This document shows, in pieces, positions 6,212 to 57,154 of a stretch of DNA of 64,000 nucleotides. The position numbers and the translations under genes are program-made. The notes beneath the pieces were generated by a model that worked only from the letters and a program-made list of their open reading frames with translations, did no database searches and was not told the origin of the DNA. Numbering within the stretch: the stretch's first letter is position 1; each line of letters starts with the position of its first letter. Source of the DNA: Zygnema circumcarinatum SAG 698-1b. Lineage: Eukaryota; Plantae; Zygnematophyceae. The stretch lies in NCBI GenBank assembly GCA_037447605.1, contig CM074804.1:4875909-4939908 (forward strand). Direction: 5' to 3'.

Positions 6212-9200
6212 TCAGGGTGACGCGGGCTCATAGCGGCATACGCAGTCGTAGATAACTCCTCCACAAAGCCTTTCTGCAAGCCGCTGGTTCTTGATCATTG
6301 CCAACTGCCAAATTCCCAAACCAGACGAACATCCCCCAACAGGTCCACGAACGCAGGTCAGGATAATAAAAGATCTTGCAAGTTGTACTCACTGTGCGCA
6401 CGAGGGAAAAAGAGTCTGCCACAGTGAAGCCAGAGTCAGAGAGAGAGGGAGAGAGATTGGACATAAATACCACAGATTCTTCTGGTTGACATAGACACTA
6501 AGGTTATTACTGCTAAAAGCATACTGCATACAAAATGAGAATCTAAACCTTCGGACCCAAACCTTTTTGTTCGTGAAGCTTTCAAAGAGATTCGTCCACT
6601 CGACCTCTCTCCTAGGAATGGAAATACATGTTCAGCAAAGAAGCAAATCCACACATGCGCAGACATAAAATGCTTCTCAAATATGTTTCTGCGGGCAAAC
6701 TCAGTATGGCACTTACCTTTAATGATTCACATTTGAACCGTGCAGTGAAGTTGGTGTGCAAACTCCGTCCCATACCCTCCAGCACCACCTGCATACCGCA
6801 GTTTCAGCATAGCAGTCCAACGTTCATACGCAGTGTTTAAACATCATGCTTCCAGAGCTCTCCACAACGTAAAAGAATGTTTCCACAAATCCACCGACAA
6901 TCAACAAATGCAACCGGTAGATCTCTAAAAAAGCTGAAAAAGTCACTGGCGAAGTCGAGTGATGCAGCTCTTTACCAGATCAGCTTCCCGACTGGCCTGT
7001 GCAAGCTCAGCACTGACTTGGCGGAAGTCAATGCAAGGACTGCCGGACCCACTTTCAACCACCATGAGCTTGGCTGATTGGGGGCTGCCATTTGACAGAG
7101 AGTTATTGACCTCTCCCTCGGCTGCTACAGCATCCACAATTACTCCGCCAGCCTCTGCTGCTCGTCGCAAAATATCACAGCACTGCAGGCAGATAACTCA
7201 TGGCAGGTCATCAAGAATGGTCCGAGATAGCAAGCAGGCTGAAGAGCACAGACAGTGACGCATAGATCAGTTAAGATGAAAGCTGAGAGAGAAAGCTCAA
7301 GACCAAGCATTTTGCAATGGGGCTCACTTTGGATGCAGCCGCGATGATTTCTGGCAGTTCTGCCGCTGTTACATCATTTATGGCTGGCAGAGAATTGGCC
7401 ACCAATACCACCTGCACATCACCTCAGCCATCGTCGACTTCGTAAAGGAGGCCGGTTCTAGAACTAATCTGGCATTCAATAATAATCTGAATTCAAAACG
7501 CAAGCAATGAGTATGTGTGTATATATATATATATATATGAATATTCATTCACTGTCCGCAAGTACAAAGTTTCTGTGTCTCACCTCTGTCCCACGCCGTA
7601 GCAACTCTCTGGCGAGTGGCAGCATTCCCAACACGATGTCGGCCCCTGCATTATCCACGAACAGAAGGGCTCGCTTGTGGGGTAGAGGGGGGGGCTTTCC
7701 TTCCTTGCCAAGAATCCGCTCTTCGAACTGATCAAAGTCGTCTATCTGCTATGCACGTCAAAATGCAACATCCCTGTCACTATGCAACCGGAGGGCTTAC
7801 ATGAACTGGAGAGGTAGAGAACAAAGAAAAAACGGAAACCCAAATAGCAAGCGAGAAGTAAAACACCCGATGAAAAATGACTAACACAGGAAAGGCTTTA
7901 ACTCCACAATCTGCATAGAGCACAGTCCATGACCAACAAAGGCTGAACCCAAAAAGAAACGACCATAGAAAACCTGCCGACTTATGATTCCTGCCTCATT
8001 TCCCGGCTGCTCTCGCACTTTCCTTTCACGATCACAAAGAAACAGCTTACCCGCCATGGCCGCTGCATTTTCTTTCTGCTCATGCGATAAATTTCCAAAA
8101 TTGTCCCTCTCTGATAAAGCTCAACGCAGGCTCGCGATCCCCAGTCGAATATGTTTGCCGCCAAGACGCCTTCGACAAGTGCCAAAAGTCGCCTCTCCTG
8201 AGAAGCAGCAGCAGTGCTTCCCCTGCAGTTAAAATCAAAAGCAGCTTTCTGCCTTCACACACCTTCCGATCATCTATCTCAACCAACAGTCTCCATCATT
8301 GGCACTCATCATGGCCATTGCAGCAGTAGAAAACTCCTTAGTATTTCTACATCCCCACATTTCTGTTCCGTGCTTGCTTCTCCTGTATATGCTGCTCTTT
8401 GATCAGGCCCCGTGTAACAGCCTTCAAGGAAAGAGTTCAGCTTCAAGGAACTAGTTAATGTTCAGGTGAGTCAAATTGTTCTAAAAATTCTATTGTTATT
8501 GTTATTCTATTGTTTTAATTCTAAATTCTAATTGTTCTAAATTTATCTAAAGCAAAGGGACATACAGCGGTCATGGAATCGAGCTCCGATAGAAGGTCTG
8601 GCAGCACCGCCAAGGAAGCCTCGTTCTCTCTGTCACCAACCCACGAGCTAAAAATATAATTAAACGTATACTAATCTGTGATCGACCGGAACAGATAAAC
8701 TGTAATTAATGTCTCTGAACTGGCCAACAAGTTCTCTTTGTGGCCTACCTTCCTTTATGCATACCTAATATTGACCTTGAAGAACCAACAAGCATACCTT
8801 GGGACCACCATTATAATAAGCTGAGGATCAGTTAGCAAGTCCTCAGCTTTTGCTACATAAACTTCAGCAAAGTAAAGCTGATCAGGCTTACCTTAGCTTC
8901 ACAGCTCGATACGGATCACTGAAATGAAACTCGCGCAAGCATTCTTCCCGTAGTTCAAGCAGATTTGCAAGGCCGAGCTTCCCATATGCAGCAGGCTCCT
9001 CATGCAGCCTGCGAATCCAGTACTCCAATGTGAGCATAAAACTCCTAATACTGAAAACACCCCAAGGAATAGTAATTTTGAAAAAAAGCAAACGCTAGGT
9101 TGTCACTAACCGCAATACATTCCCGCGTCCTTCGCTTCCAAAAGAAACAGGATTGCCTTACACTGAAGGAGGCAGATAGTTTCACTACCTGCCAAGATGT

Positions 9201-12200
9201 GCTCGGAAAGCTCGTGCAAATGCATCTCCTCTCCTTTTAGAATCCTCCGTCGCTCCCTCACTCGCCACAGCCTGATGATGATGCAAACAAGTCACTGCCC
9301 CGTGAGATAGAGCCCATCTGCATTCACTGCAAATGAGAAGTATGTGCAAAGTTCTGACCGTTCCTTTCAGCTTCACTACGGGAGACACAGCGCAGGGGCT
9401 TCATTCGTAGTAGGGTGGTAAACCGAGAGCCGAAATGCCGTCCGTTCAGCCTCACGAGTGACACGTGGCATCAAGTTTCCGTGGGTTATCACACTCACCA
9501 TTTCCACTAAGCTCGGTGTATGTGCTTCCAGAATGGAGAACCAATACCTATACAACCCAACACAATACAACCCGAATTAGGTTAGGTTTAACACGAATTC
9601 CTGGCCCTGAAACCACTCATAAAGTAACCATCAAATGAAGGTTCCATATAACAAATGACCATTTCAATAAGCCCGGCCGGGACTTCAGCCGATTGCAATA
9701 ATATTTTTCAGATTCCACAACAGGACCAGAATTGAGCAAGTTCTCTTCACTACAAGCAGAGCTCTCGGAAACGAATCCAACTGTAGGCCATGTCTTAAAA
9801 CTTATCCGAGAAAGAACGTAATCTACCACACAATCACTTTCCTGCATCGTGTTTCTGATGGTTCGCTTGGAATAGGAGAGACATTCTTACTCTCGCTCCG
9901 CTATCTCCCCGAGGTCAATAGTATTGGGCTCATAACTGCATGATTCCCTTTCCCATTGTCTATGTCATACAGCAAGTGGCAGAGGAAAATGGAGGTCAAT
10001 AAAAGCACATCCAAGCATCCTGCTCGTATCGAGAAGTTGATGAATCACATGCTGTCTGTAGGCAGCGTAGGGAACAAAGGTAAAAAGACGGAGGACTGAG
10101 GATGACCTGGCTGGACAAGACTACAAATAGAAAGGTGCCTTAATTCAGAAGAGATTCAACAGAACACGTATAGGCTTAGGTGCACTTTTCATCCTTTAGC
10201 ATGTTGTCGAACCAACATTGCTTGACACGCAAAACTGCAGCCAATAAGAGCTAACACGCCAAGTGAGGATTGCATCAATGAAGTAAGGTTCCATGCTGCT
10301 TTTGTTTCATAAATCAGTTGAAGGTAAAGGCAAGGTACGGTTGTCCAGTAATAATCCTGAAGGGAAGTAAGTTAAAAAATGGCAATGGGAGTTGACTAAC
10401 TCTACGTCACAGGGTGTAGGTCTACTTGGAAGACTAACTGTTACTGTTACGCAGGGACACATGCAGAACAGAGATTCTAAATATGAGCTTACCCTTTAGA
10501 ATCCGCCAACAGGGGGAACATCTCTAGAGATGGAATGAAATGCAAGACACCAATGCTAAGGGCCGCATTATCAGAGCGCAGCGATGCAGCGCCACGAGCA
10601 AGGGGCCGCTCAAAACCACCCAATCCAGTCGTCCGTACAGGTGTAGGAGCCGTTATTTCGCTTCCTACTTTGACAAATTTCTCCATCCAAGAGATCTGCA
10701 ATAGACCATGCTCACCAGAAATAGAAGAAAGAGTGGTGAAAGACAAGAGCAGTTAAGGAAAGTTGCCACAAAAGATAGGAGAGGTAAAATCAAGTTCAGA
10801 TGTATGTTCCACACCTCCCTTCTGCTGCAAAGGGCTCACAGGCTCACCAGCTGCGCAAAGGATTGCAATGTAACTTCCTTATCACAAACATTTCATGCGG
10901 GCGCTCAACCTTAACCTTAATTTCACTTTTACGTGCCAACCTTTTCATTGAGATCACGAATAGGTGGCCCTTGAATCTGCCCGCGAGCATATGGTGCACC
11001 CATGGGGAAACGCTCTACAAACTGCGACGGCATGAGATGGTCGAGCCCATGCTCGTCATAGCCCAGGAAGGCTCCAAGAACTCCCAGGAAGCCCTCATGG
11101 CGGAGAAACATGGCCTGCATCTCTCCCTTTGACCTGGAATGCAAGAAGGGGGACACGGCTTCCCGTTCACAGCCAAGATTACGAGTATCACTATGAGGAC
11201 CTATTTAGCATTCCAAACATTGGACTATTCAGTGTCAGCAAATAGGCATTCCATGTCTACTTATACAACAAGGCGAGCAAACAAAATAGAGCCTTGAAAT
11301 GGTCATGCGTGAAACGAGACTACACCACGTGCAAGGTTTTCCAAATTGGATCTCTTCAACTGGACAATAGTACGTGGACTTCGGACTTAGAGCGATGCCG
11401 ACATGCGTCCTTTAACCTTGTTTCGAAAACCGAACGTCAGACCTCACATGGACATAATCACAAAGAAACCTGCCTGCACATTGTTTCTAACGATGCGTAT
11501 GAGGAGAGGTAAACAACAGTGTCAAAACCAATCCGATGATGGATATTTACATATGGCTTTTGCAAATTCAAAGCCAATCAAGTGATTCATCTAATAGTTG
11601 GAGCGATTCCATGGTAGAGCTTGACCGTGAAAGGGCCAAGTGACGTACCAGAATTTGATTGCAAATGACATAGTATCCATAGTGTAAGCATGGCCGCGGA
11701 TAAAAAAACCTCCAAAGAAGATCCTCTTCAGCCCATATCTAAGGGCATTTAAATATGCAATCTACACACAATGATTCCCCATAACCCGCAACAGAGGTTC
11801 CTTCACAGTTCTGAAACAACGAAGGATTCAATTGGAATGAAATAAGGGAAGCGCAGCCTCAATTATGTGTGTCAAACATGTTGTTCATTGAGACAAAATC
11901 ACCAGAAATGGAATTTGAAAGGAAATGGGCCAAAGGAGTAAACCATGCAAAGCAAGCCGTCATCAAGTGAGACACTCAGGATATCCTTGATGCGAGCCAA
12001 AGCATAGGACACGGAAGTAAACCAACCTGTCCGATGTTATAGGATATCATGCGCAGCAAGGAAAGGGCTATATCTTGTGGCCGATACTCCTCAAGCTCTT
12101 TTGACTCCCCAACAACCTTCCCAAAACTGGACGCAATTGTGGAAGCTGACAGCCCAATCTGTTGCAAGAGCACGTGACACGGCAAAGATGGTAAGAGTTC

Positions 12201-15200
12201 AGTTCCATACAAATAGGAGCAATTCCAGGGCAAACATTCATTGTATCGAAAAACACGGCCAAAACAAAGGTAATATTACTATAGTAATAGCCAATATTAC
12301 TTCTACCTTTTCATAGTCAAGGCCACCATAAATATCTCCAACCAACATGTCAACAGCCGCGTTATCTCCGCCTTGGCTTAGCTCCAAAATTTCATCAAAA
12401 CTGCTCGCCCGGCCGCCCGAAAATGCACGACAAATCAGCGGCTCCTTTGCCCCGTCCCTCCAAATACAGCCAATTTAATGCAACTGCCTCGTCTCTTTAC
12501 CCTTCGTAAGCCATGGAATTTTTTATGTTTAAGCAGGAACAGACGCACACAAAAACGAAGAGGAGCAGCACCTACAGTGGTGGTGCGTTCGTTTCAACGG
12601 ACTCTCATATCACGCCAACTCTTATTGCACACTAAGGACAGTTGCATAACAAGACTCAGCTGCACAACTTCCCTATCTTACCAACAGGCCGTACACATTT
12701 CATGGGCTTCGGTCACATTGGACCGAATGACAATTATTACTCAAACTGGATTTACGGGAGAAGAAAGAGACTATGACATGTGGACGCATGTGCTTATATG
12801 GTCCACAATCACAGCCCTTCATAGATACGCAAATACTAAGACAGCAAAGTGTAACCCAACCTTGTCGTCTTGGTGAGGAGTCGGCCGAGTCCCCAAAATG
12901 TTCCACCACCCAAGTTGGTGCCACTCACTCGTTGAAATTGGCCCGGCCCGTCTACCTGTCTTTGCAGGAAATGAGACAATCGGAGCTCTATGCTACTGAC
13001 ATCATACAATCCTCAGCATCAAAGAATTATTAACACACTCCTCTTGTTCAACAATTAAGGAGCAAAACGGCATCAAAGCAACCGTGACTATGCCTGATTC
13101 CTGAGGTTTAGTCTAAGTGAGGCAAATCTTGCTCAGCTAATTGGAGACTTCACGCCAACATCGACTAAATATTCATTCGGCACATGAGAGGTAACACGGA
13201 AAAGGTACAACTCTGAGAAAAAGCTTGCCCAGAATGTATTAAACATGAACACTATAGGAGGCCGCAACATTGGGGAGTCAAAAGTGCACCTTCAGGATGC
13301 TGACTCCTGAACCGATGTTCACAAGCAGGTATGGAAAGAGTTCTCCCTCATCGATCTGTACAAATTCCTTATGTCCTTCCAGATGTGTGAAGGCCTCATC
13401 CCGAATGGCCTGGCAACGTCACAGCTCACAGTTGTCATTGGGAAAGATTTCAAAAAAGAAAAATGACCACCTGAGACGATTTTTTATATCAATGGCACAG
13501 GAGAACGAAGCGGTGATTCCACCTTAAAATACATCAGCCAATGCATGTCCCAAGTTGGTGAAAGCTTAAATCCATTCTCCTACTTCAGAAGAGATTGATA
13601 GCAGTCATTCTCCCGCAACTTACATCGCCCACATTCTGTTAATAAGAATTTGCTACGTCCAGTGTGAGTCCTAATCATCATGGCAGGGAGAAAACGGGAC
13701 GGGGATCAGTGAATGCGCTAAGAACCTAATAGAGTGACAATTTAACCAGGTGGTTTACGAAGAGTTATACTCAGCAGTTTAAAAAAATTGGAAAACCACC
13801 GAAGCGGAAGCGAAGACTGTATGTTTTTGCTTGCATAAAGGACCTACCCTGAGCAGGAAGTTAGCTCCCGCCACCAGTGACTTCATTTCGTCCTCCTTTT
13901 CAAGTGTCACGCCCAATTTTTCCTTGAATTCGTCGGCATACTTGAATGCTCCACCACCTGTTGCCTGCTCAGTGTGCCCAACCGGCAAAAGCTTCAACGT
14001 TTTCCCTCGACATATCGACTTCCACCATAGTTCTACTTTATGCATTTCTTCACTTGTTGTTCACATCACACTCTTGCGAATAATAGGCGCACGCTACAGA
14101 TGGAGTTAGCTGCAGCGCAGTTCTCTGACGGCAGCACACGTCTCAACAAACTTGCGACAGAAGAACCCCACGTGTGATAGCCATATCTGAAAGTTCTTTT
14201 CTGGCCCTTTTCCTTTTCCTCTCCGTCTTTCAAGGCCTCACCACAAACGGAGCATCGTGCAGCTCCTGTTCCGTTCAATGACATTTAAGGCTGCTTACCT
14301 ATTCGACTGTTACAGGAGGTATTCTGTGCCGTTTTAAGTGCTGAGAGTACACCAGAAACGAAAGGAAAATGCTAATGCAAGTCTGCGTAGACTATGTAGG
14401 AAACGTGGAAATGCAAGCTACGTCGGCTATGCATAGTAAAACTATGCCTCCACTCTCTTATAGGTGAAGGCAACAACTTAAAACCAAATAGACATCAAAG
14501 GATGCCTCTCTCGTGTTGCCTTGAACGATGCAACTGGAACCCACTTCACCTTAATGGAGGTGACACCGTCACCAAATCTCCATGCGCCGCCCTCATCCAC
14601 ATCGGGTGCTGCGAATGAATCAACGATCAGGTATGGAACATCAATAGTGAAATCCAATACTAGTAATCTCCTTAACCAATTTCCCTCCAAGATCAAAGAC
14701 CATTAGAGCGTTCAAGATCGTTAACTGCGGCAGAAACAGCAGAGATCTATTGGATCACTGTGCTGGCAGTTCATGCAAGCTTTAGCACAAAAAGACTTCA
14801 ATGACTGTCAGATCTTGTGGCTCACTTTTGTAAGGATCCTACACGAGGCTGGGCCATGGCTAGGGATGGCCGGTTGTACGGAAATTATAAACTTTACTAT
14901 AGAAGTACTGGGATGCTATTTACAAACCTTTTTGGCTAGATACACACATTTTTCACCGGTCAGATTTAAGGGTTTTGGGGGTTTTTATTTAACCAAAAAG
15001 GTGTGCATCTAACCAGAAAAATATGTGTAAAAACCAAATTCCTAAAAATAATTTTAAATCAGAATTTTATAACGTATAAGGAAAATGCTATTTACACACC
15101 TTTTTTGTCTTGATACACACCTTTTTTCGCCGGTCTGATTTTATTTTAGGGTTTTTATGGTGATGGGGGGTTTTTTTTTTAAAGGAGTGTATCTAGACAA

Positions 15201-17299
15201 AAAAGGTGGGTAAATAGTAATTTCCCAATATAAAACCCAAATAATTTTGGTTTGTACGAACAAATGTACGGTCAGTACGAACGAATTTATTGTGAGATTG
15301 AACAGTACGGACATTATGGACGGTACGGCCGGTACAAGTCGCCAGTCGGTGACATGACGTCATCCCAAAATTGTTATAAAATTGAATTTCAAATGGACCC
15401 TAATTCTATAAGCGTTATGAAATTAATAAAAAAATTATAAAATAATTGCATTGCCATCCCTAGCCATGGCTGCAGATGGGTTGAGCCAGAACGTTTTGCT
15501 ATGGAAACGAAGGAAATTGAATGAAAAAACGAAAGACAAGATGATCACGAATGTACACGCACTTTGTTTCTCTCGTCTGCAAGTAGAGTTTAAGCTTGAG
15601 TGATTGGACATACAGCCAGTGAAAAGCTTGGTACAGCATGAAAAGAGGCTCACCAAGAGGATTATAGGACTGAAGTTTTTTCGACTGAATAAAGTCGAGG
15701 CAGTCCGATAGCTTGCTGGTTTCAAATTTCACAAAGTGAAGGCGCCCACCCAGAATCGGAAACTGTGTGCTTCTTTGGCTGCGTCCTGCCTGCAGTCGAT
15801 CGGCCAGTTCCTTTCTGCTATTCTGACGTACAAAGACCTGTGGAGATTCTACGGGCTCTGAATGGCGAGAGAAGTATACAAGCTTTATAAGGGATCCTGC
15901 AACCAAACACAAGGATAGTCTCCCGTCGAAAAATTATTCGGGTGAATGCACTGAAAGCATAACGCAGGACTGCTCGAAGATAAAACAAATTTTGCACTCG
16001 TGAAAGAGGGCGAATTGGTTTCTAAGAGTTTGAAGCATTTTCCACAAAGCTGACGATTCTGATGCTTCTTCATTCAAACAATATTTTTACATGCTTTAGT
16101 TCTTATGGGTACATAATTGACAACCACACATATTGCATGGTATTTATTGTTTTAGAACAAATCGACCATGTACTGATCAGGTCCTGAAACAACACTACCG
16201 ATTGCTGCATTCAGCATTGATCAGCAAAAGGACGTCCAACTGTCAGTTTGAATGACCTAGGTTGAAAATTATCAAGAATAAGTCATTAAAAAAAAGAAGA
16301 CTGCCTTCCACACGTCTACATTAATCTCAAATAAATCTGCCAATGGCACACGTTACTCTTTCTTGTATCATCATTTGTAAGTTCCACACAGGAGTTACTT
16401 CGTTATCTTCTACTTAAAATCAAACCGCCAATGTTTCCGTTTGGTTCGTACACCTGAACAGTCGCGAAAAATTCTGACTAGATTTTATTATTAGAAAATG
16501 TCAAATATGCGGCATCTTGAATGTTTCTTGAAATTATTCCCCTAACATTCTGCTTCAAAAAGCTACATGCATGATTCAATAGCTGGAACAAGTTAAAAGC
16601 TCACAATTAAAATTTTACTACTCTCACTACATTGGAAAGTGGCACAACTGATTGAGCTGCGCCAAAAAGTTCTCTAGCCTCTCACAAGTTATTTTCTTTG
16701 AAAAAGTGAATCAAAACGAAAAAAGAAGGGTTCCGCTAGGACATAACAAACCATTTGGCCCACACTTAGGCGTGTTTAAGCCTGCAATTTGCACAGCAGG
16801 GACATAAGCATCTCGCTAAGCGTCAATAAATTCCCTGAATAATTTTCGTAGTGTGCTCTCATTCCTCCGTAGTTAATGTGCGCCAATACGCGACCGGCCT
16901 TGAGAAACTTCCCTCTGAACTGGACGAAGAAGGGCCCATGAACTCACCTCCAATATCGATGGCGAAATGTGACACATCACTTGTCTGGTTGGGGAGCACA
17001 ATGCTCGGGTTCTTGTCCTCCCGTGACCCCTGAATTGCAGCTCCAGAGAGGTCCAGAAACGGCCGCCCGAAGGCGTTGTTACCGCTATGGCTGCCATGGA
17101 GCTCACCGGAGGAGACAGCCCCCCCCTCCTCCTCTCGTTTGCTTACATCCGAAGCCTCGCCACGGCTGCCATGAGCTGCGCCGGTCTGCTGCTCCTCCAT
17201 GTCCCCGCCCTCCTCCTCCATGGCTCCCCTCGCTCCCCCCCTGCCCCTCGCTCCCCCAAAAGTGCTTCTCCTCCTGTACGAACCGTACGGTGTCGCCAT
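6212..17299 (-). CDS. PANK2: Pantothenate kinase 2 (type II PanK fused to DUF89/ARMT1-like phosphatase domain), 22 exons
   Basis: Exons 17299-16948, 15896-15654, 14608-14550, 13964-13848, 13409-13290, 12955-12861, 12400-12307, 12158-12027, 11761-11649, 11133-10941, 10695-10493, 9935-9891, 9547-9499, 9271-9189, 9008-8892, 8629-8566, 8197-8051, 7745-7584, 7411-7328, 7182-6976, 6788-6717, 6304-6212; all GT-AG with consistent phase. Motifs IDIGGSLIKLVYF, TGGGAFKYA, LLVNIGSGVSI, GTNLGGGTFWGLG, LAANIFDWGS, LFVDNAGAD, VVLEGMGRSLHTN, YDCVCRYEP follow plant PanK2. Start could be the ATG at 17222. Confidence 0.95.
14861..15462. mobile_element. Non-autonomous hAT element (MITE, 602 bp) in PANK2 intron 2
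   Basis: Ends TAGGGATGGC ... GCCATCCCTA (10-bp TIR, similar to the Ac end (T/C)AGGGATG). Identical 8-bp TSD GCCATGGC at 14853-14860 and 15463-15470. AT-rich interior with no transposase ORF. Confidence 0.9.
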
Positions 17300-17510
17300 C
17301 GGACCGTACGAATCGTACGAAAAACAAGTGCTGTCAGATCTGTGTCACAACGGCTCGTTCAACTGCCAACGGGCGGACGCGCCGGTCCATGTGGGAGGAT
17401 GCTCGGGGGAGGGCGCCAACTGCCATGCTCGGAGCGGAGGGGTGGAGGGGAGAGAGAGAGAGGGCGGGAGGGGACGGCTTTACTTATGTCCTGTGGCCTT
17501 TCTAGCAAGC

Positions 17511-20500
17511 ATGAGGCATCCACGCAGCAGGAATCAAGGAGTGGATGAGACACTTTGGGAAGTGAAAGACGGTCCTCACCGGACGGAGAATGGCAATGAA
17601 GGGCTGCAGGGGAGTGGAGAGGAGACTGCTCTCTTGAAAGCTGTTGGGCAAGCTCCTCTTGAGGATCCTTTTTCCTCTCTGCATTTGGAACGGCCGCAGA
17701 GGAGAGCGAGAAAACCGCGCGCAGAACGAAGTTTTTCCCGGAAGGGCGTCTTAGTTTGGCAGATCAGCTGCTGCGTTTTTGGAGGAGTGCTGGTTCTACT
17801 CATGCTCTCCCTTTTTCAAGGAAGTTTTTCTTCATTAAAATCACTGAAAGACAAGGTACTTTTGCAGCAAGATAAGCTTCAACCTTTTTTATTTATTGCT
17901 TCGCATGGATGCACAGCAGTGCGGTGCAGAGGAAAGAGATATGGAAGCGATTTGCTGCTAAATTCGATGGAAGGGGAAAACTCAAATTTACTCTGCAGTG
18001 TACACGATTGTTGCCTGTGATGAGTTATGCAGTTCACTCTGAAAAAACTCTGAAAGCTAGCTATCACCCTAGCGCTTGGTAGTGAGGAAGTTGAAAAAGT
18101 TGCTTCCGCTACATTGTTACTGCAACAAACAACGCTTGTGGGTGTGTACATAACACGATATACATGATACGTTCGTGTATTCAAGCATGTAAAAACGTTA
18201 TGAGTGGTGACAGTAGTTTAATTTTCACCATCTTCATGAAACGTATATCCATGTACATACCCACATCCATGTTCTTATATCCATATCCATGTATATTCTT
18301 TGTAGCTATACCCGTTTGTATTAGTGAAGGCATGTAGTTTGGATCGGGAAACTGAATGAGAATAATTCAATGCACAGCTGCCCAACATAATCCATCGAGT
18401 GAAAATTCTGAAGTATTCTGAAGTATGTGTCTGCATATGCCTGCGCAGTTATGTAAGTCGTTGGATCAGTCAAGCATCTAACTCTAGCAGGCATATCCAT
18501 GGCTGGTAGTCATTCGCAATTGTCAGATTTTCTTCGACGTAAGGCTGCTCCATCTGAGCTTCCTGTACGGGCTTTTGTTTACCTCGCCACATAAGCGTCA
18601 TTTCTTAATTTTATTGTTCTATTGCTCACTCAATTAGACGCCTAGCTAAGGTTTACTTGACTCATGAAGTAAGAACTTTGCTTCAATTTGTAAAAAGGTA
18701 CGTTCTGATTGCGGATATTGAATGCCACAGAAATTGGAGAATGAAGAATCTCCAGCATCTATCTCTGTTGCAACACACACCGGAGACAAAGAGGATCCTC
18801 AGGATTGTAGTTTGCACTCGGAAGAACATCTCAAGCGGGCAGGCAAGCAGGGTTGCTGGAGCCTCCGTGGAAACACTAACCTATATCCTCCTATCAGAAA
18901 GCATAGCAGGCCGACAGCAGCACTTTTGAAAGCTCTCAGACATTACGAAAAGCTGCACAAGGTACTCGTCGTGGCCCGTGTGGATGATGGACCCAAGAAA
19001 GTTGTGATGTTCTATTGACCATAGAGGCAATAGTGTTGAAAGCTTAAGGATTTTTGAGGACGGCTGAAATGGGCCCACACTAAGGAACAAATATAGGAGA
19101 GGCCAACAACGACATGTATCAGAAATGTACTGAAATTCCAAAATAATGCGTTATTAGAGCCAGTAGGTGGTAACATTTGTAGGTCTAGGCTATCCTTTCA
19201 CTTGATTTACGCAAGCCTACAGATTAAGTCTTAGAATGACAAAGATCTCTTACGTAGGACTAATTCTTGATAGTTCACTCTTCAATCACCTGTTCTGCTG
19301 CAGCACCAGGAAGGTGTTTTCTGAGGATTAATTTTTGTCTGTTAGTACATATCTGCCGTAAAATCATCTCCACCAGAGAGCTTTGTATAACCAATCACAT
19401 AGGTCGGTGTCTTCAAAACAGTCAAAACTTGAAGTAAAGGTCGAGAAGTAGAGTTTGATCTATGACTTAGCTGAGAACAAGGGAGAGTCATTGTTGTACA
19501 TAACAATACTCAGCCTGTTAGATGCTGTTATGATGCCTCAGATAAGTCAATTTGGATGATTAATAATCAATGGGGCAATCCAGATGGATCTAAGGCAGTC
19601 ATGCGGAGTGGTCGCTGTTGCCATTGCAGAGCTGCGTGGCCGGGATATCTACAGGCGAGTGGGAGAAGCACTTCAATAGCCCTCTGCCTGGCTACAAGCA
19701 TTGCAAGTTGTCTCGCCCTTTTGAACTACATTTATCATTTACACACCCCCCCCCCCCCCCCCCCCCCCCCCCCCNNNNNNNNNNCCCCCCCCCCCCCCCC
19801 CCCGCCCCAACATCATGCTTGGCAAACCCTGTTTTATAGCATCGCTCCTTGTCTTTGTCAAAAATTGAGATGTGATCTACAATTTCCAAACGCAGTGAAC
19901 CCGTTTATCAGAACCTTCTCTTTCAGGAAATGGTTGATGAATTTTTCAATCGTCCAACAAACGTCAAACCTTTCCCAAGTATCCGGATTGGTCTTCTGGG
20001 GAATACTTTATGATAACCACTTAAATGTTGGAGGTAGTTCATGTTTCTCATCCCCGGGCTGCTTTCCACAGGTACTTGATCTGGATGGAGCCAAACCGAG
20101 GCGTCCCCACTCGCCTCCTTTCCTTGGTTTCCGCCTTCCTTTATGCAATCCTCACAGAACGTACCCTTCTGGTTCGAACAGATCAGGGCATGTCTAGGTA
20201 AATAATACAATAGTATATATGGCTTCACAGAGAGAGAGAGAGCTGCAATCTCGTCTGAGTCCAGAGCTGAGTCTCAGATGGAGCCTATGATGTTGTCTAT
20301 GCTGCCAAATTTTGGGCCAACTTCAAAAAGGGCTACGAGTGCAAGCAAGTCTGTTCAGCTTGACTTTCCAAGCTTGAGAAGCTTAGGGTGCAGCTGCCTC
20401 TGTGCTGAATGTCTATTTTGACTGTGGGGTGGGAGCAGCCTTTTGTGTGAGCCATTTCCACTTTCTTCATGGTGGATGCCCAGTGGCTTTTGGCCGGAAA

Positions 20501-23500
20501 CGCTTTCTGTGGCACCTCATCAGGGGGAGTATGTCAATGGCAGTACAAGCAACTGGGTCAATCCGGTACTTGCAATGCACCAGATTGGCTCTAATTGACG
20601 GCTTTGAAATAATGTATGCGTGGTGAGACTGAAGACTGCCAAGGGGCAGGAGGTTCGCAATGGTCGCATGAATGGGCTGAATGGAAGAAGACTTTAAGAC
20701 ATGGCAGTTCGTCATGAGCTGGACTGTTTGAAGGCGTTTGTACTTCTTTAGTCTGACCTTGTTGCTGGGTCTCACTCTACTGCAGCTTGACTTTGTCATT
20801 GTCTTTCCTGATGGGGTGGATACTATGGACGGAGCAACCAGCCAACAAATCGCCAAGATTTGGTCAACATCTATCTTCATGTGAGTCAAATATTATTTTG
20901 ACTTTACTTTATACTGTCATAACTTGCTTATGCTTGCAATCCAGGGACATCATGTGGTGATAAAGGTAAACTTTTATATGCTGGATGTTGAAGGGAATGT
21001 GGACCTTCCAACCTTTTCGCACTCTCTTAGTTGTCTTGATTATTCTGATTTGAATTTCAAACCGTTCCCTCTTTTGAAGCACCCCCCAGTAACACAAATG
21101 GGCCTACTATTGCCAAGGATGTTATGCTACTTATTCTATCATGCGGTAATGCGTACCATCCATAACTGTATAGCTTGTGAATGCAGGAATGGAATCAGGG
21201 TATTCTCTTTGGGTAATAGCCTGGCTTACTGAACAGAGGGAGCTATCTTGGGCATGCAACAGGATAAACCGTGGGAGGCGGACTGGCAGTTCTTCTGTGA
21301 TTCCATGCAGGCAGCTCTTGCCAACGTTACATGGATGACATTTTTCAGTGATCAGGTATGCTGGGTGTGCACGTGGAGCATGTAAGCTGATGTTGTTCAA
21401 GTTCTGGAGTGCTGCGGCCTCTGTTGCTCGACGTAACTAGTCAATAACCTCCTTTTCTTTCTGTTATGTTCACTGGAAGACACATGCAGCTGATGCTAAT
21501 TGCAGACAATCTGAAGGTATTCAGACATGCATAGTGGATTCCTGGCTGAATTATGGATTGTAACTTTGTGTTGTCGCAGCCGTCTAAAATTGATACACAC
21601 TGCTTATGTGTTCAAAGCTAATGCAACCAAATTCTCTGTATATCAGTCTAAAGGATTGGAGCCCTGCTATCCAATAGTTATGCATTGCCAAAAGTGAGAC
21701 AGGCTTGAGTAGGGCTCATATGTGACCTGGACCATCACTCGACAAGGAGACTCAAAGACCGGTGTGACCTTGCCTGTGTATGCTGGTATATCCGTATGAT
21801 ATCTATCGAAGCTTTTTTTGGTTGTTTCCAAAGGAATAGGGGACAGGACAGCAGGAGCTTTTAATTCATAGTAGAATGCATTTTTTCAACATATTCACAC
21901 TTCACTCTGGCATGTAATTGCAGTACGTTGTTCCAGGACTCTTCCTCGTTCCCCAGTTTCACCAGCAGCTAAGCCAACTGTTCCCAAACCGAGTGGTTCT
22001 TACAAATCTTGGACGGTATCTCCTACATCCCCATAATGCAGTGTGGGAGAGAGTGTCCCGATCGCATAGCGGATACTTGCGGCATGCTCATCGAAGGGTG
22101 GGGATCCATGTGCAAACGTTTGGTGAAACCGGTCCAGTTGTGTACCAGGTCTGAACCCCTCCTGCCATTCCCGCAAGCTACCACTTGTAGTTAGAGAAAT
22201 ACATGGACACTTCAAAAGACAAATTCACCTCATTTTATAAAATGTTGAGGTTATGAGAGATAGTGCAATTGTGTGTGCGTGCAACTCCTCTGAAAGTTGA
22301 GGCGATGCAACGGAAATCTTGAACTGGAAGTGAAGCTTTAAATCTTGACACATGCCGGTTGCTGCACGATGTATGCTCCCACTTTACAGAGAATATTGGA
22401 TTGTGGTACTAGCCATCACCTGATCCCCAGTCCGATTTCAGCCGATGAATGGAGAGCCTACTTGAAAAGAACAGCCGACAACGAAATCTTTGTCCAGAAG
22501 CAAGTGTCAGCAGAGGAGAAAGGAACGAAGCCCTATTTGTTGGCAGTGTTTGTGGCCTCCACGGATCTGCAAGCTTTTACTTACCTGAAGCAGGCTTTTT
22601 CGGAGCAGCCAGTAGAAAATCACAGGTGAGAGTTATTAAAGAAAACCAAAAGCTAGCCACCTTCAAGGAAGCCTAACAATGGCTGTGTAGAGTAGTGCAC
22701 TCTGGCATCAACGATGAGTTGGAAGTGAATTACGTGAACACTGTCAGAAATCTATGAACTTCCTTGGATGCTTGCTGCTGTGGGGCCCACAGTATTGCCT
22801 CTGGAGCAATGGTTCTGTAAATCGTCCTCAAGTGAGGATTACAAAGTGGTGTACTTTCCCTGCAGAAAATGCTCGTTGCTTGAAATATATAGGAGATGCA
22901 TCTAACTCGTATTCAACCACTGCTTTTTCTTTTTCAGTGTGGTGACAGTGTTCACAGAGAGCTCAGTGTATGAAAATGCTCTATTGAGTCCGGAGCAAAA
23001 GGCTCTTGCAGAACTATGGCTCCTTAGCCTCAGTGACAGCCTCCTTATAAGGTAAATTTTTTTTGACGATCTGAAAGTGAAAAGAAGAAAAGAAACTTGT
23101 ACTGTTGACACCGAGAAACAAGTCGAGAATGTGAATGCTTGTTTTTTACGGCAAAAGCTACTCAATGCTCTACTATTGAAAGCAGGCAGTGCAAAGCAAG
23201 CTGAACCCCGTAAAGATAATCTCTCCGTTTTCCTTAGAAATAGAAGTGCGCCATCTCCTGAAGTTAGCTTCTTTTTGAAAGGGAAAAACTGCACATATGT
23301 GGGTGTATATGGAGAGAAACAAGTGTGCACTCAAACATCTGTGGATGAGAAAACCACACTGCATCGTAACATGCACACTGACAAACCCCTGTTTTGCCAG
23401 CATATTTAAAAAAAAAAAAAAAAACCTTTATACATAGTGGCTTCTTTGCTCCACGTCAACGCAGAATTAGTTCACTGAATTAGTCTCCTTGTTGTTTTGT

Positions 23501-50634: not shown

Positions 50635-51729
50635 GTCTCGCGTGGCCTGCATGCTGTACGGAGCGCCGGTCCTGTTTGGCGTTCACACGGCGCCCGGGAC
50701 CCAAACCGCGACCGAGCCTGCGGTGCCTGCTCGCGACTTTTTCGGTTCGGCGGGCGCTCAATTGCTCGGGCTGCGCTCCGCGTACAAATGCTTTGTTCTT
50801 TTTGGCCTTGGGTCCTTCGCGACCAGTTCCTCGTGGTTCCCCATGAAGGTTTTGGCCATGTACATTTGATGGCATCATCGCCATCGTGAGAACAATGCCA
50901 TACCTTTTCATCTGTAAATTTTCCCCGTTGTTTTCATCTGTAAAGTTAAAACAAAAAGCAAAGAAAGGTATGGTTGTTGTACGTCTGAACAGTGCAGGGA
51001 CGCCGTCACAACAATTTGAAGAAGCCTTTCGCTATTTAAAGAAAAAAATATATATTATTAATTTTTTTTTTTTTTTTTTTTTATCATTATTTTCGCCTGC
51101 ACCATGAGGTCGTCAATCTCAGTGTCCTGATCGAAATTGAGATAGACTTTATTGAGCTCGTTGGCAGACAGTGGTTACTGCTTTTGCACTAGAACCCGGG
51201 GGTGACTTTCTGAGAAGCATGGCTTTGAGAAAGTAGCTACTGCACAATTGATAATTCCTTTGGCTTGCTCCTCCAACAGTAACACATACCCCTCATTGGA
51301 AGTTTTCCGCCAGTATAAGACACCCTTGGTCTACGTTCGTAATACAATTGCACGGGCTTCACTACAGCGCGTGTCACGGCGTTTATGGTGGTAAGGCCAG
51401 CCACTTGGAAGCTCCGCATGTGTCAAATCATGGCTTGCTTTCCAGATGCCTTCCCTAACACAGGCGTCACATTGCAAATATTCACATTGCTTAGAACCAA
51501 ACCTCTCCTACATTAGACATGGCATTCTTTTTCTCCCACTACCTAAAGTGCAGCGCATGATTTCTCAAAAGATTGTTTGATTGCGAATGAAAGTCAAAGG
51601 CAAGTGGTAAAGCAAATTAAGGTTACAAAGGACGTTGTAAAGCATTCTTGTGAGGAGCCAGATCCATGTACAATTAACATCACGATAAGACTATAAACGC
51701 TCTTGCTGAGCAGAACTCCGCAGCTGCTG

Positions 51730-54700
51730 TCACTGCTTGGCCGAGCTGCAGGCCTTGCAGGCCTTCCGGCAGTACCCCGGAGTACCCTGCGAATCTTGAA
51801 CCATGTACAGCGGATTCTTCTTGCACTCCCCAAGGGCGGCCCACTCCTCACACTGCGGGTGGGCATTGATGCATGAGGCGGGATCGATGGTTGCCTGTTC
51901 AAAAGAAGACACGTGAATCCATTTTGTAGCTGACCACTTCTCCCCCTCCAACACGGGGCAGCCGGAATGAAGAGACGACTGATCAGGATTCGCATCTGGA
52001 TGGAGACTGAAGAAGAGCAGGGCGTCTCCTTTGGTCGGCTTCACTGCAATAGCCATCCTTCCCAGCTCAAACTTTAAGAGCGCGTGATGGAAAGGCCTTA
52101 CACATCAAGCACAAACCTCTTCAAATGATGCAGAACGATGCAGACTGCTCTGCAATCAAACACCTAATGTCACGATCGGTTGAGGCTGTTGTAAGTTTCT
52201 AACACTACCAGAATTGGCCGGCTCTGGAGACTCATTGTGCTTGAAAAATCGTTTACACAATCAAATCAACTTTCCATGTCTAAGAGCCTGTTTCGTAATG
52301 ATGAAACTCCATCAGAATGGAAGTAGGATCATACCAGCAATGCCTTGTTTTCCGCATGGAGACCAGGTGTCATCTTTGACCGTAGTATCGGGCTGTTCCA
52401 AAATCCCGATCAGAATACAAAAGCAATTTCTATAGATGAGCCTTGAAGGCTTGAGAAAAAGTGGCTACAAAGCTGCAAGCTGGATGGAAAATCAGCACAC
52501 TGCCATACTCTGACTTTGAGTAGATAAATACCCAGCTCTTCCCACGTCTGACACCCACCTCTGATGAAGGAAAGACGGTTTCTCCTCCTTTGGTAACATC
52601 AGAGAGGTACATGAGGACGGTGGCTATTCGGTGGCCTCCCTGCTGTGTGTTCAGTTTGTCGTGAAAGTAATCAAAGTGCGCATCATATTTCTGCCCATGG
52701 TTGTATCTGAGAACTTGGATAGCCTCTCCATTCTCTGCAACGTACAGGAAGCATAATACAGTCAGCTGCGAAACAAATGTTGTCGACTAGAAAGCAAGCA
52801 AGCAAGAACCCGCTGCTTGAGTGCAGTCCTGCTACAGATTCTGCAGGTAAGTGATGACGAGATCTAGCAGGCTTTAACGCTGTGATAACTCTCGTCCACA
52901 TCCGCGGTGGAGATAAGAACATCGCACATTCACGAAAGGTGCAGGAGAGATACCGAGAGATGGACACTAGACGCAAGCAAATCCTTCATGATTTCTGAAA
53001 CATCCGCCAGCAAGAAAAAAGTGAACACCGACCCACCTTTTGGAATAAAAGTCCAGGCAGCGATGCGCTCTTCAATCCTCCTCACAATGTCATCCTGCAC
53101 ACGCAAGGCCACTTGATTTGATGACATATGATGGACAAATAAGAACATCACATTCTAAAATGCTACTTAGAGGTCATGATACCCCACTTCCTTACTACCA
53201 CACTCTTAACATGAACCAGGGAGATTGAAAAGAACAAAATAAACACTTGAGTTCAGCCGCTTCACGTACCAAGGGCATAGAACACATGCAGTCCACCAGT
53301 TCAAGACATATCAAAAGTGAGGGCTGAGCCAAAAAATTATAAATCAGGAAAAGGAAATGCTATTTTGCGGGTGCTAAGTTAAAAGAGTTAAGTTAAAGCA
53401 TGTAAGCTAAGTTAAGACATGTTGCAATGGATGATAACAATACATCGGCTGCTTACGATACGTTATAGTCTTGAAAATCTACGCCATATCCTGTCCGAGA
53501 AAGCTTAGTTACAAAACGAAAGCAGATCAAATGTGTAAAGGCTGCAGTTCTCACAGAACTTACTGAGCCAAGCTTGCTGCACTTCAACATCTGCCAAAGT
53601 ACTGTAAGCAAATCATCTACATCATTATCTCAAATGCATCACAAATGTAAAGTTCAAACATGAACATGTGACAAAACGACATCTCAGATTTGCGTAAGTC
53701 AAAATAATTTAGCAAAGGTTAAGTGATTTCGCAATGCACGTGCAATAAGCGGCAGATCAAAGCCCGGGCAATACGGAAATGGAGTTGTGCGGATGTGAGA
53801 CAGGTGAGAAAAAAGAGCGCAGAAACTGAGAACTGGAACTGAAGGTGGGCAATGGAGCCACCACTGACTCTTCCTAGCATCCAAAAGGACCAGCTAAAAA
53901 CATGCATCCATGAATGAATACTCAGCTTAATAATACTATTAAGCTGAGTTCTTTCCTGATCTCAGCAAACTGACAAATAACCGACAAAGCAATTCAGAAC
54001 AATGAATCGTAAAATGGATCTTGGTGAGAGGACGAGCTTTACGAACTGAGTATACCCAGTCAGCAGTCCTCATATTTTCCACCCTGAACAGTGCGTCCCC
54101 AAGAAATTCGCCCCGATTTTGCCGAAACTACCTTTTTGTACGGTAACAATGTGTTAGTCGTACTATTCGTACTAGCCGTACTTTACCAGTCGTACTAGCC
54201 GTACTAGACGTACTATCCTCCTCCTTGCTGTACTAGCCGTTACGGGCTTAAGCAAAACTAACCGAATCTTCCCGCACGTGAAGATCAGAAGATCACGCGC
54301 GCATCAGAGTGTTAAGAATGCCTCAAATTGCATGATTGCAACTGCTCTCCCTGCATTTTTGGAAGCTTAATTCCAATTCAAGCTCAAAGAAAACTGTGAT
54401 CACGTGGCCTCTTAGAATACCTTCTTGACTTTGCGTATCATAGCTCTTGTGCATCACTTGCCATTATGCTTGACGTAACTGCCAGTGCATGCCACGCATG
54501 ATTGCTGCAAGATGCTTGCCCATCCCAATGATGCTACTTATGTACGCTATATCAGATAATAGATCCTGAAAATGGGGCTTGAGCTGATGACAGCCATCTC
54601 ACAAGTCTAACCCAAACTAACTTCATCATTGTTGCTATGAAAATAACAAGCCAACCGGCTATTCTCTCTAACTTAATGAGTCGGTGGACAGAAAGTATAG

Positions 54701-56672
54701 TGAGCTAGAGAGATCACACACGCCACACCTGCAACTATCGAGGTTTACCGACTACGTGATCATATAAGAGATTAATGTCCAAAGAAAATGTTGTGATCTG
54801 CAAAGATTTGATACCTTCCAACTTATGAACACTGAGACGATCAATTTTGGCCCACTCATTCGTGGCGGACAATAAGTTAGAGATGAAAGACTATTTAACC
54901 ACTCCACTCCTAGCATTCCAAAAATGCAAGTAGGCCACAGCTGGTCCGGATGTGGATACGTCCTTGGGAAGGCTCGTCTGCCCTTTTGGATGAGAAATAG
55001 TGTCTCCGGAACAGAGCAATTACTGCAGGGTGCACTTGAAAGATACCTGGTATTTGGAAAGAAACATTCCAGCGCTCGTCCGAATTTCACTCAAAACACT
55101 CTTCCCGCTGTTATACTCTGCCACCGTTGACCTCTCCACTTTGTCCCTCGCCTGCTCGCAACCGCCGACGAGCCAGGCACACACAAGGACCACAAAGGGA
55201 ATGCGCAAGTAAGCGGGAGAAGCCATCAGGAGCAGTGCATCACCTTCTTGACAATGAACATCCCCGTGCTTGTGCGGATATCACTGGCCAAAGCCTTCCC
55301 GGACACCGTGTCTGCAACCATTGACTTCTGCAACTTGGGCCGCGCCTGCCACAAGGCAGCGCAGGAAATGCCCAGAATCCCGAAAGGCACAAACAGAAGG
55401 GGGGGAGCTATGTTGGGACGGCTCTGTAACTCTAGCTTGCAAACCCTCAAAGTAAACTTTCTATACACCTGCTCAATTCCCAGAAAGACTTGGACTGAAA
55501 AACCAAAGCAAACGGCATAAAGACTCAGTGTGCGGCAACCTGACGAATGTTTTGCTTGCGTGAAGGAGAACACTTCCTTCACTATGTTCAACAGCACAAG
55601 GACTAGGCAGAACCTAATAGCCTAAAAATGCAATGCCAGTCGTAACTGCGACCCTAGCACCCCGCATGGCGACTTAATAAATTGAAGCAGGGTTCAATTG
55701 TTCCGTTTCATTTTCAAAAGTAGAGAATGTTTGAAAACTATTCTCCACACACCTGACCTTAGATCCAGTGATAAAAACATTTTCAGCTCAAAATCCTTGT
55801 GGAATTTGCCGAACTCACCAATTCAACTAGATGATCACATTCTTCACCGGAGAGAAACCCCTTGTACAAGAATGCCCTGAGAAAATGCAACTTCCAATCA
55901 GACGAATGAACTGCCTTGAAAAAATGCACTATGGGAAATTTCACATGCAGCTGCTGCACAATAGAAACAAGGTTACCTTGGCTTCCAAGACAACTGAGTC
56001 ACCTTCGTTGGATCAATAATGATTGGATCAGGTCCCCTTAAAAGAGTCTTTCCTCCAGCATGGATCCCCCCCCCCGCTTCTCGGAAGCTGGCAGACCCAA
56101 AGCCCATCACTAACTGAATAAGAACCCCTTTGTTTAAACGAAGGTATGACATAGGAAACTGAAAGAACCTCAGCCATCAAAGGAGAAAAATAGGTCAAAT
56201 GGTCAGGTTGTGGGTCCGGTGCTCCGCCTTTCCATAAGTCGAAACAACAAGGGCAAGAATGGCCGCGGAATTGCTCGGCTTTATCTACTACAGTTCTGTC
56301 TGTCGGTGCACTTTGACGCGTACAAGAAATTCACACCGCATTCCTCGGCACCGTGATATAACCTAAAACAGTTCCTATTGGAATCTCTAATCACTGCAAA
56401 AGCGGCAAATTACCCCGAGAGACCCCGTATTTTCGAGTCGTAAAAAAAATGCATAGCCATTATTCATCCATTTTTCACACCAAAAGACGATGCTGAGAAC
56501 CTGCAACAGCCTACTCCCATCTCTCCACGCTGCAAGGCAGCAGAAGCAGACAGCAAGCTTACTCATCCCCCAGCCAGCCCGGTAGAGAGTCCTGCTCCCA
56601 TGCGTTTCCTCCAACTCCTGCGAAAATAAGGAGAACGGCAGCCCCCCATAGCCGCACCGCCATGCTGCGCAT
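51730..56672 (-). CDS. P4H: Secretory-pathway prolyl 4-hydroxylase (2OG-Fe(II) dioxygenase) with C-terminal ShKT domain and a tandem duplicated exon
   Basis: Exons 56672-56563 (signal peptide), 56087-55977, 55876-55819, [55345-55244 and/or 55151-55047], 53094-53037, 52734-52559, 52392-52335, 52043-51730. Motifs QLSWKPRAFLYKGFLS.EECDHL, RTS.GMF, YDAHFDYF (HxD), RIATVLMYLSDV..GGETVFP, SLHSGCPV, GEKWSATKWIHV, and ShKT C...CEEWAALGECKKNP.YM...CRKACKAC. Confidence 0.95.
54137..54234. repeat. CGTACTA(G/T) short-repeat array in the long P4H intron
   Basis: Eight GTAC cores at 54138, 54160, 54169, 54178, 54192, 54201, 54210 and 54230, mostly on a 9-bp period. Confidence 0.85.
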
Positions 56673-57154
56673 CAGCGAGGGTGTAACAAAGAAACTGAAA
56701 AAGACCCTTTTCCTCCTCCTCCCCTATCCGCTTCTGCGCTGCCCTGCACAGCCTCGTCCTTCCTGAGGGAAAGTCTCCATTTCGAGCCCTGTTTCAAGCG
56801 GAAGGCAATTAGGAGCTGTCACGTGTGTGAACTTGCCGCGTGGCAAGCTGCGATTGGTCCATCCTGCCAGCGTCCTCCATTTTTTTCCGGAACTCACAGG
56901 TCACAGCTCCATGTGCCAAAATCGGCAGTGGTCTGCCGATACTGCACAGCTATTAACGGCATTTAAGGGATATCCCTTATTTTTATATGATGCCTGCCCA
57001 CGGGCATGGGCATGGGCCATGGGTCCACCATGCATGATGGCATTGGATGTAGGTCCGCTCGAGTCCATGCATGCCATGAGCGAGCATGGTGGTCGCGGGC
57101 GGCCCGCGGGCCGTTGTTGGCGGCGGACAAGATGGACTACAGCGCGCCGAGGCC

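Follow-up and report, generated by a model that had tools for sequence, protein, structure and literature searches.

Mutually exclusive tandem exons encode two versions of the hairpin loop of a predicted prolyl 4-hydroxylase in the alga Zygnema circumcarinatum

Can one prolyl 4-hydroxylase (P4H) gene of an alga give rise to two enzymes that differ in the loop holding the substrate, and, if so, how are the two versions of that loop kept apart during splicing? The question is raised by a locus of Zygnema circumcarinatum SAG 698-1b that lies in the window analyzed here, a stretch of 64,000 nucleotides (contig CM074804.1, positions 4,875,909 to 4,939,908 of the forward strand; coordinates given below are window positions unless another sequence is named). 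In this locus, the initial annotation had pointed out a pair of homologous phase-0 exons, A and B, with AG/GT borders and without stop codons, and we reproduced both their coordinates and their peptides exactly.

To place the two exons in their gene, we used Logan contigs from four runs belonging to two studies (one run from the first and three from the second), mapped on window positions 51600 to 56800. No record identifies the runs as RNA; it is the contrast in contig depth, about 100 to 600 in exons versus about 5 to 15 in introns, together with the presence of a GT..AG joint at every intron, that identifies the contigs as spliced RNA. On the basis of these joints and of the translation, the gene consists of eight coding exons on the minus strand, the fourth of which exists in two versions:

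56563..56672, minus strand: coding part of exon 1, with the ATG at 56672-56670 (joint 56087/56563 in three runs; isoform assembly and tblastn)
55977..56087, minus strand: exon 2 (joints 56087/56563 and 55876/55977)
55819..55876, minus strand: exon 3 (AFLYKGF...DHLVEL), whose donor at 55819 is joined to A or to B (joints 55818>55344 and 55818>55150, both 'cut +1')
55244..55345, minus strand: twin exon A, one version of exon 4; 102 nt, 34 amino acids, no stop by translation (an A-specific contig joins both neighboring exons in 4/4 runs)
55152..55243, minus strand: intron between A and B, 92 nt, spliced out in no contig
55047..55151, minus strand: twin exon B, the other version of exon 4; 105 nt, 35 amino acids, no stop by translation (joint from B to 53094 in 4/4 runs, joint from 55819 to B in 3/4)
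53037..53094, minus strand: exon 5 (DDIVRRIEERIAAWTFIPK), with the acceptor common to A and B (RNA joints)
52559..52734, minus strand: exon 6, catalytic core with the His-x-Asp motif (RNA joints; PF13640)
52335..52392, minus strand: exon 7 (RNA joints)
51730..52043, minus strand: last coding exon, with the end of the dioxygenase fold, the ShK domain, and the stop (joint 52043/52335; PF13640 and PF01549)

Exon 1 provides the product with a signal-anchor-like N-terminus, and the coding part of the last exon runs from 52043 to 51733, where it is followed by the stop codon. Pfam model PF13640 was matched by exon 6 (E value of 2.6e-10) and by the last exon (E value of 1.8e-5), and the C-terminus corresponds to an ShK domain (PF01549). 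The iron triad consists of H-F-D in exon 6, completed by a distal His (SLHSGCP) that the last exon supplies, and the protein is 60 to 70% identical to annotated P4Hs of plants and streptophyte algae. Judged by these domains, the gene product is predicted to be a secretory-pathway, plant-type P4H, i.e., a 2OG/Fe(II) dioxygenase carrying an ShK domain at its C-terminus, and to be ordinary apart from its twin exon. The isoforms with A (328 amino acids) and with B (329 amino acids) are both in frame and identical outside the 34- or 35-residue segment that the twin exons encode. The 1952-nt intron downstream of B contains, at positions 54140-54240 (minus strand), a short array of GGCTAGTACG-like units, where contig depth is locally raised in one run and where the runs show the only differences in their sequences (54221-54235). 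A neighboring gene, at about 49655-47000 (minus strand), starts with a clear NAC-domain N-terminus, after which comes a long open reading frame (48074-47004).

Exon A (...ggcag/GCGCGG...AAGAAG/gtgatg, with slashes marking the borders) and exon B (...gagcag/GCGAGG...TACCAG/gtatct) are in phase 0 at both ends, with AG/G acceptors and G/GT donors; adjoining, homologous, similar in length, equal in phase, and each equipped with splice sites of its own, they have the characteristics of tandem duplicates. Alignment of the two showed identity at 18 of 33 residues and 62 of 99 nucleotides. Over the 33 codons, the Nei-Gojobori method yielded a dN of 0.43 and a dS of 0.91, and the resulting dN/dS of ~0.47-0.48 might be read as a weak indication of constraint. 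Searched alone, exon A matched Chlamydomonas reinhardtii P4H-1 (Cr-P4H-1) with an E value of 3.5e-5 and exon B with one of 1.8e-3, while a profile built from six hairpin exons matched the same protein with an E value of 6.6e-14; given these separate matches and the profile match, the likeness of A and B reflects homology, and chance is ruled out. Common to both exons are S8, V10, S15-G16-K17, S21, I23-R-T-S26, and G28-M-F30 (exon numbering), and the differences fall at the tip of the loop (D-T-V in A versus E-Y-N in B; A-L-A in A versus S-V-L in B) and at both exon ends. With its tip reading DTVSGKALAS, exon A is one residue shorter than B, and it retains each of the 10 residues on which the six aligned hairpin exons agree, including S8, V10, G16, R-T-S (24-26), G28, F30, and K33. 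The single exon closest to B, among those checked, is that of Closterium (27 of 35 residues identical). Comparison of these sequences points to B as the canonical version, like those of land plants and Zygnematophyceae, and to A as a diverged copy. The acceptor of exon B (GAGCAG/G; window 55152-55157, minus strand) is a NAGNAG-type tandem acceptor, the upstream AG of which, if used, would lengthen the exon by one in-frame codon; in the contigs, only the distal AG is used.

What the exchanged segment contributes to the enzyme can be read from the Chlamydomonas structure. Since the 3GZE construct begins at Val29 (PMC9676403), chain position 42 corresponds to residue 70, and A and B align to residues 70-102 of Cr-P4H-1, spanning the whole hairpin loop. 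This loop is defined as Ser77-Thr94 and forms, together with the betaII-betaIII loop, a tunnel that sequesters a (Ser-Pro)5 peptide (PMC9676403); the identification of the segment as the flexible substrate loop, already made in the initial annotation, is thereby borne out. Both exons retain I-R-T-S, which aligns with Arg93 and Ser95 of the R-T-S motif of Cr-P4H, and both have Ala at the position equivalent to Val80, a residue that makes a main-chain contact (PMC11252719). Splice variants of human C-P4H-I alter the hairpin loop as well (PMC9676403), and the variants go back to two homologous exons (reference 16 of that paper), so that the parallel drawn earlier with the exon pair of vertebrate P4HA1 holds for the very same loop. 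In collagen P4Hs, a docking-based proposal has the hairpin and betaII-betaIII loops setting the preference for the X position (bioRxiv 10.1101/2023.06.28.546674). It is plausible that the A and B isoenzymes differ in substrate preference.

The contigs show how the two exons are used. Joints that include A (55819>55345 and 55244>53094) were present in all four runs, at depths of 573, 397, 192, and 173. For B, the joint 55047>53094 was likewise present in all four (depths of 284, 177, 343, and 211), and the joint 55819>55151 was present in three (364, 299, and 169), with the depth of B-specific contigs amounting to about 320, 177, 320, and 190 per run. Neither a joint from A to B (55244>55151) nor one skipping both exons (55819>53094) was listed in the four runs, in contigs, which drop rare variants; joint inclusion or double skipping may thus occur at a low level. 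Each mRNA thus carries either A or B, and both forms are abundant. If contig depths are taken at face value, which makes for a crude measure, A accounts for roughly 0.64, 0.69, 0.37, and 0.48 of the transcripts; it is a major form in every run and the dominant one in two. The proposal of mutually exclusive use, made before any transcript was consulted, therefore agrees with four exclusive joints in RNA contigs, and the flanking junctions it had named, 55819 and 53094, are exactly those that the contigs use. Of two worries attached to that proposal, the first, that the weak donor of A (GTGATG) might keep this exon from being spliced in, is refuted, and no sign was seen in the contigs of the second, that A and B might routinely be included together.

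How, then, might joint inclusion be prevented? Enforcement through the reading frame and nonsense-mediated decay (NMD) was rejected, since the lengths of the two exons (102 and 105) are each divisible by 3, which leaves an open frame whether both or neither is retained. Incompatibility of U2- and U12-type splice sites was considered on account of the B donor (GTATCT), which is U12-like, but was likewise rejected: the donors of A and B both use the acceptor at 53094, which makes such a mismatch unlikely, and no U12-type branch site was found near this acceptor. A search for competing RNA pairing returned only imperfect inverted repeats of 10-13 nt, and the predicted RNA fold of the A-B intron was no better than that of shuffled sequence (z of 0.23). 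The distribution of adenosines in the A-B intron is more telling. They occur only at +4, +8, +18, +34, +42, +88, and +91, and the 45-nt A-free run before the B acceptor is the longest among the gene's 8 introns (the others total about 3.8 kb, with 23% A). Given this run, the branch adenosine of B is probably located at +42 or nearer the A donor, with CTGAT at +18 and CTTAC at +34 as candidate branch sites predicted from sequence. A branch point within 42 nt of the A donor would prevent A and B from being spliced together, and we regard such steric exclusion, in which the A donor lies too close to the B branch point, as the likeliest mechanism, at a little short of an even chance. A counterpoint is that a 100-nt intron of the same gene is spliced normally. 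Between exons 2 and 3 of alpha-tropomyosin, the intron cannot be spliced because its donor and its branch point are spaced too closely. The algal arrangement would resemble that pair in having a distant branch point near the upstream donor, followed by a long A-free tract; unlike that of alpha-tropomyosin, the branch point of algal exon B is predicted from sequence.

Related loci differ in whether they have such an exon pair. The orthologue in Klebsormidium nitens (GAQ88739.1), 65% identical, has a gene model of 356 amino acids with two tandem hairpin segments. These are encoded by two 105-nt phase-0 exons (DF237404.1, positions 7493-7597 and 7656-7760) at the same position in the gene, and here too the second copy (Kn2) is canonical and the first (Kn1) divergent. 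The two loci differ in the intron between the twins (58 nt in K. nitens versus 92 nt in the window) and in the first copy, with only 14 of 35 residues identical between Kn1 and exon A. Because a doubled hairpin is structurally implausible, the K. nitens pair is probably used alternatively too, and the gene model with both copies is probably an annotation error. A seeming second duplicated exon in Klebsormidium (tblastn match at DF237404.1, positions 8812-8913) proved to be the first half of a split exon.

In the other loci compared, the hairpin is encoded once. At the Closterium sp. Naga37s-1 locus, a single hairpin exon is fused with the exon that follows it; the Physcomitrium P4H6 locus, which lacks introns in this region, likewise carries a single copy; and no second copy was found in 80 environmental P4H loci, 62 of which extended 300 nt or more to either side of the match. 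Of the other algal P4H loci compared, that of K. nitens has the duplicated exon and that of Closterium does not. The view that such exons are rare in plants is tempered by the Klebsormidium twin at the same spot. In searches of 1.84 billion representative proteins and of 5.8 billion proteins, also by a profile including the window's exons, neither the alga's own protein nor any close relative was found, the best match being 70% identical and coming from mosses.

In a tree of the 35 hairpin columns, which is poorly resolved throughout, exon B groups beside Closterium; constraining A and Kn1 to group together costs 3.3 log-likelihood units (p-AU of 0.23), and constraining Kn1 and Kn2 costs 0.04. 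The balance tilts slightly toward separate duplications in the two algae, and there may instead have been one old duplication, shared among algae, with later losses.

Some further irregularities were seen in the relatives. About 70 nt downstream of the fused exon, the Closterium locus (CANJKZ010000213.1, positions 9481-9537) contains a partial in-frame repeat, SSGAFLNKYQ plus DDMVKRIEE, which duplicates the tail of the hairpin exon plus the beginning of the following one and may be a relic of local duplication. The gene model covering this locus (positions 8001-21552 of the same contig, 568 amino acids) fuses the P4H to a Vac14/HEAT-repeat protein and probably represents two merged genes. In Vanilla planifolia HPP92_010484, an exact tandem repeat of ~43 residues (CDHLISLAKSELKR...FISKGK) extends over the hairpin and reflects either an artifact of assembly or annotation or a very recent duplication.

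We consider it probable that the exclusive use of A and B yields two P4H isoenzymes with different substrate binding, the exclusion being perhaps enforced sterically. By this route, the tandem pair at exon 4 would allow one gene to specify two enzymes with different hairpin loops, these isoenzymes would bind hydroxyproline-rich glycoprotein substrates differently, and the A:B ratio would tune which prolines are hydroxylated.

Unlikely, if still to be taken seriously, is a reading in which the isoenzymes are functionally equivalent and A is a tolerated, drifting duplicate, included through splice-site competition and without an adaptive role. The dN/dS value reported above is not strongly purifying, as drift would have it, and no A-like exon was found in the other taxa searched. 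Moreover, the two splice forms of human alpha(I), with exon 9 or exon 10, reportedly form tetramers with similar kinetics in vitro, so that a swap of the loop need not change catalysis. On the other hand, an exon that is a major form in all four runs and dominant in two is not what this reading would lead one to expect; A also keeps all 10 invariant columns and yet differs from B at 15 of 33 positions, and the segment being swapped is the loop that contacts the substrate.

We regard it as quite improbable that A and B are independent cassette exons whose both-included and both-skipped forms exist and were lost in contig assembly. Such forms would be in frame and escape NMD, both exons being multiples of 3, and contigs can prove presence but not absence; still, no joint from A to B or from 55819 to 53094 appeared in four runs in which the exclusive joints reached depths of 170 to 570. 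Nor is a tandem hairpin easily accommodated, as it would double a 34-amino-acid structural element of the fold, and the Klebsormidium model, which does carry both exons, is a prediction and not transcript evidence. That a paralog at another genomic site is the source of the A-containing contigs is scarcely credible: although the contig sides flanking A measure only 27-28 nt, A, its canonical AG/GT sites, and the sequence to either side agree with this locus, and in four runs the joints coincide precisely with the splice sites predicted.

Returning to the preferred reading, that of two isoenzymes with exchanged loops, some of its elements are already known, namely, exclusive exons arising by tandem duplication and the swap of the hairpin loop in vertebrate P4HA1; a limited literature search found no report of such a swap in P4Hs of the plant lineage. 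The locus thus adds an RNA-supported mutually exclusive exon pair to that lineage. In plants and algae, the O-glycosylation of extensins and arabinogalactan proteins follows a hydroxyproline code that P4Hs control, and the determinants of the substrate choice of these enzymes are still poorly known (PMC11252719); an enzyme pair that differs solely in the hairpin loop is a natural experiment on what this loop contributes. We speculate, tentatively and knowing that the idea may well overreach, that the hairpin exon is a recurrent target, duplicated and exclusively spliced independently in vertebrates, in Klebsormidium, and in the alga studied here, that its versions serve different classes of wall glycoprotein (e.g., extensin-type Ser-Pro4 versus arabinogalactan-protein-type Ala-Pro/Ser-Pro), and that the A:B ratio is regulated by conditions.

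Among the closest known systems is Cr-P4H-1 of C. reinhardtii (PDB 2JIG and 3GZE), which belongs to the same family and has the same fold. In its solved chains the hairpin has a single sequence, and the literature searched mentions no splice variants of the loop. Another is vertebrate P4HA1, in which, as in the alga, homologous tandem exons (exons 9 and 10 of the human gene) alternatively alter the hairpin loop of the same dioxygenase fold (PMC9676403). The enzymes themselves differ: the animal one works on X-Pro-Gly collagen as an alpha2beta2 tetramer with PDI, whereas the algal one is of the plant type, a family represented structurally by Cr-P4H-1, which has proline-rich peptides, e.g., (Ser-Pro)5, as substrates. 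Since in the plant lineage the hairpin exon is as a rule present once, the animal and algal duplications are almost certainly independent. Animals and streptophyte algae thus use one splicing device to vary one and the same loop of a shared fold.
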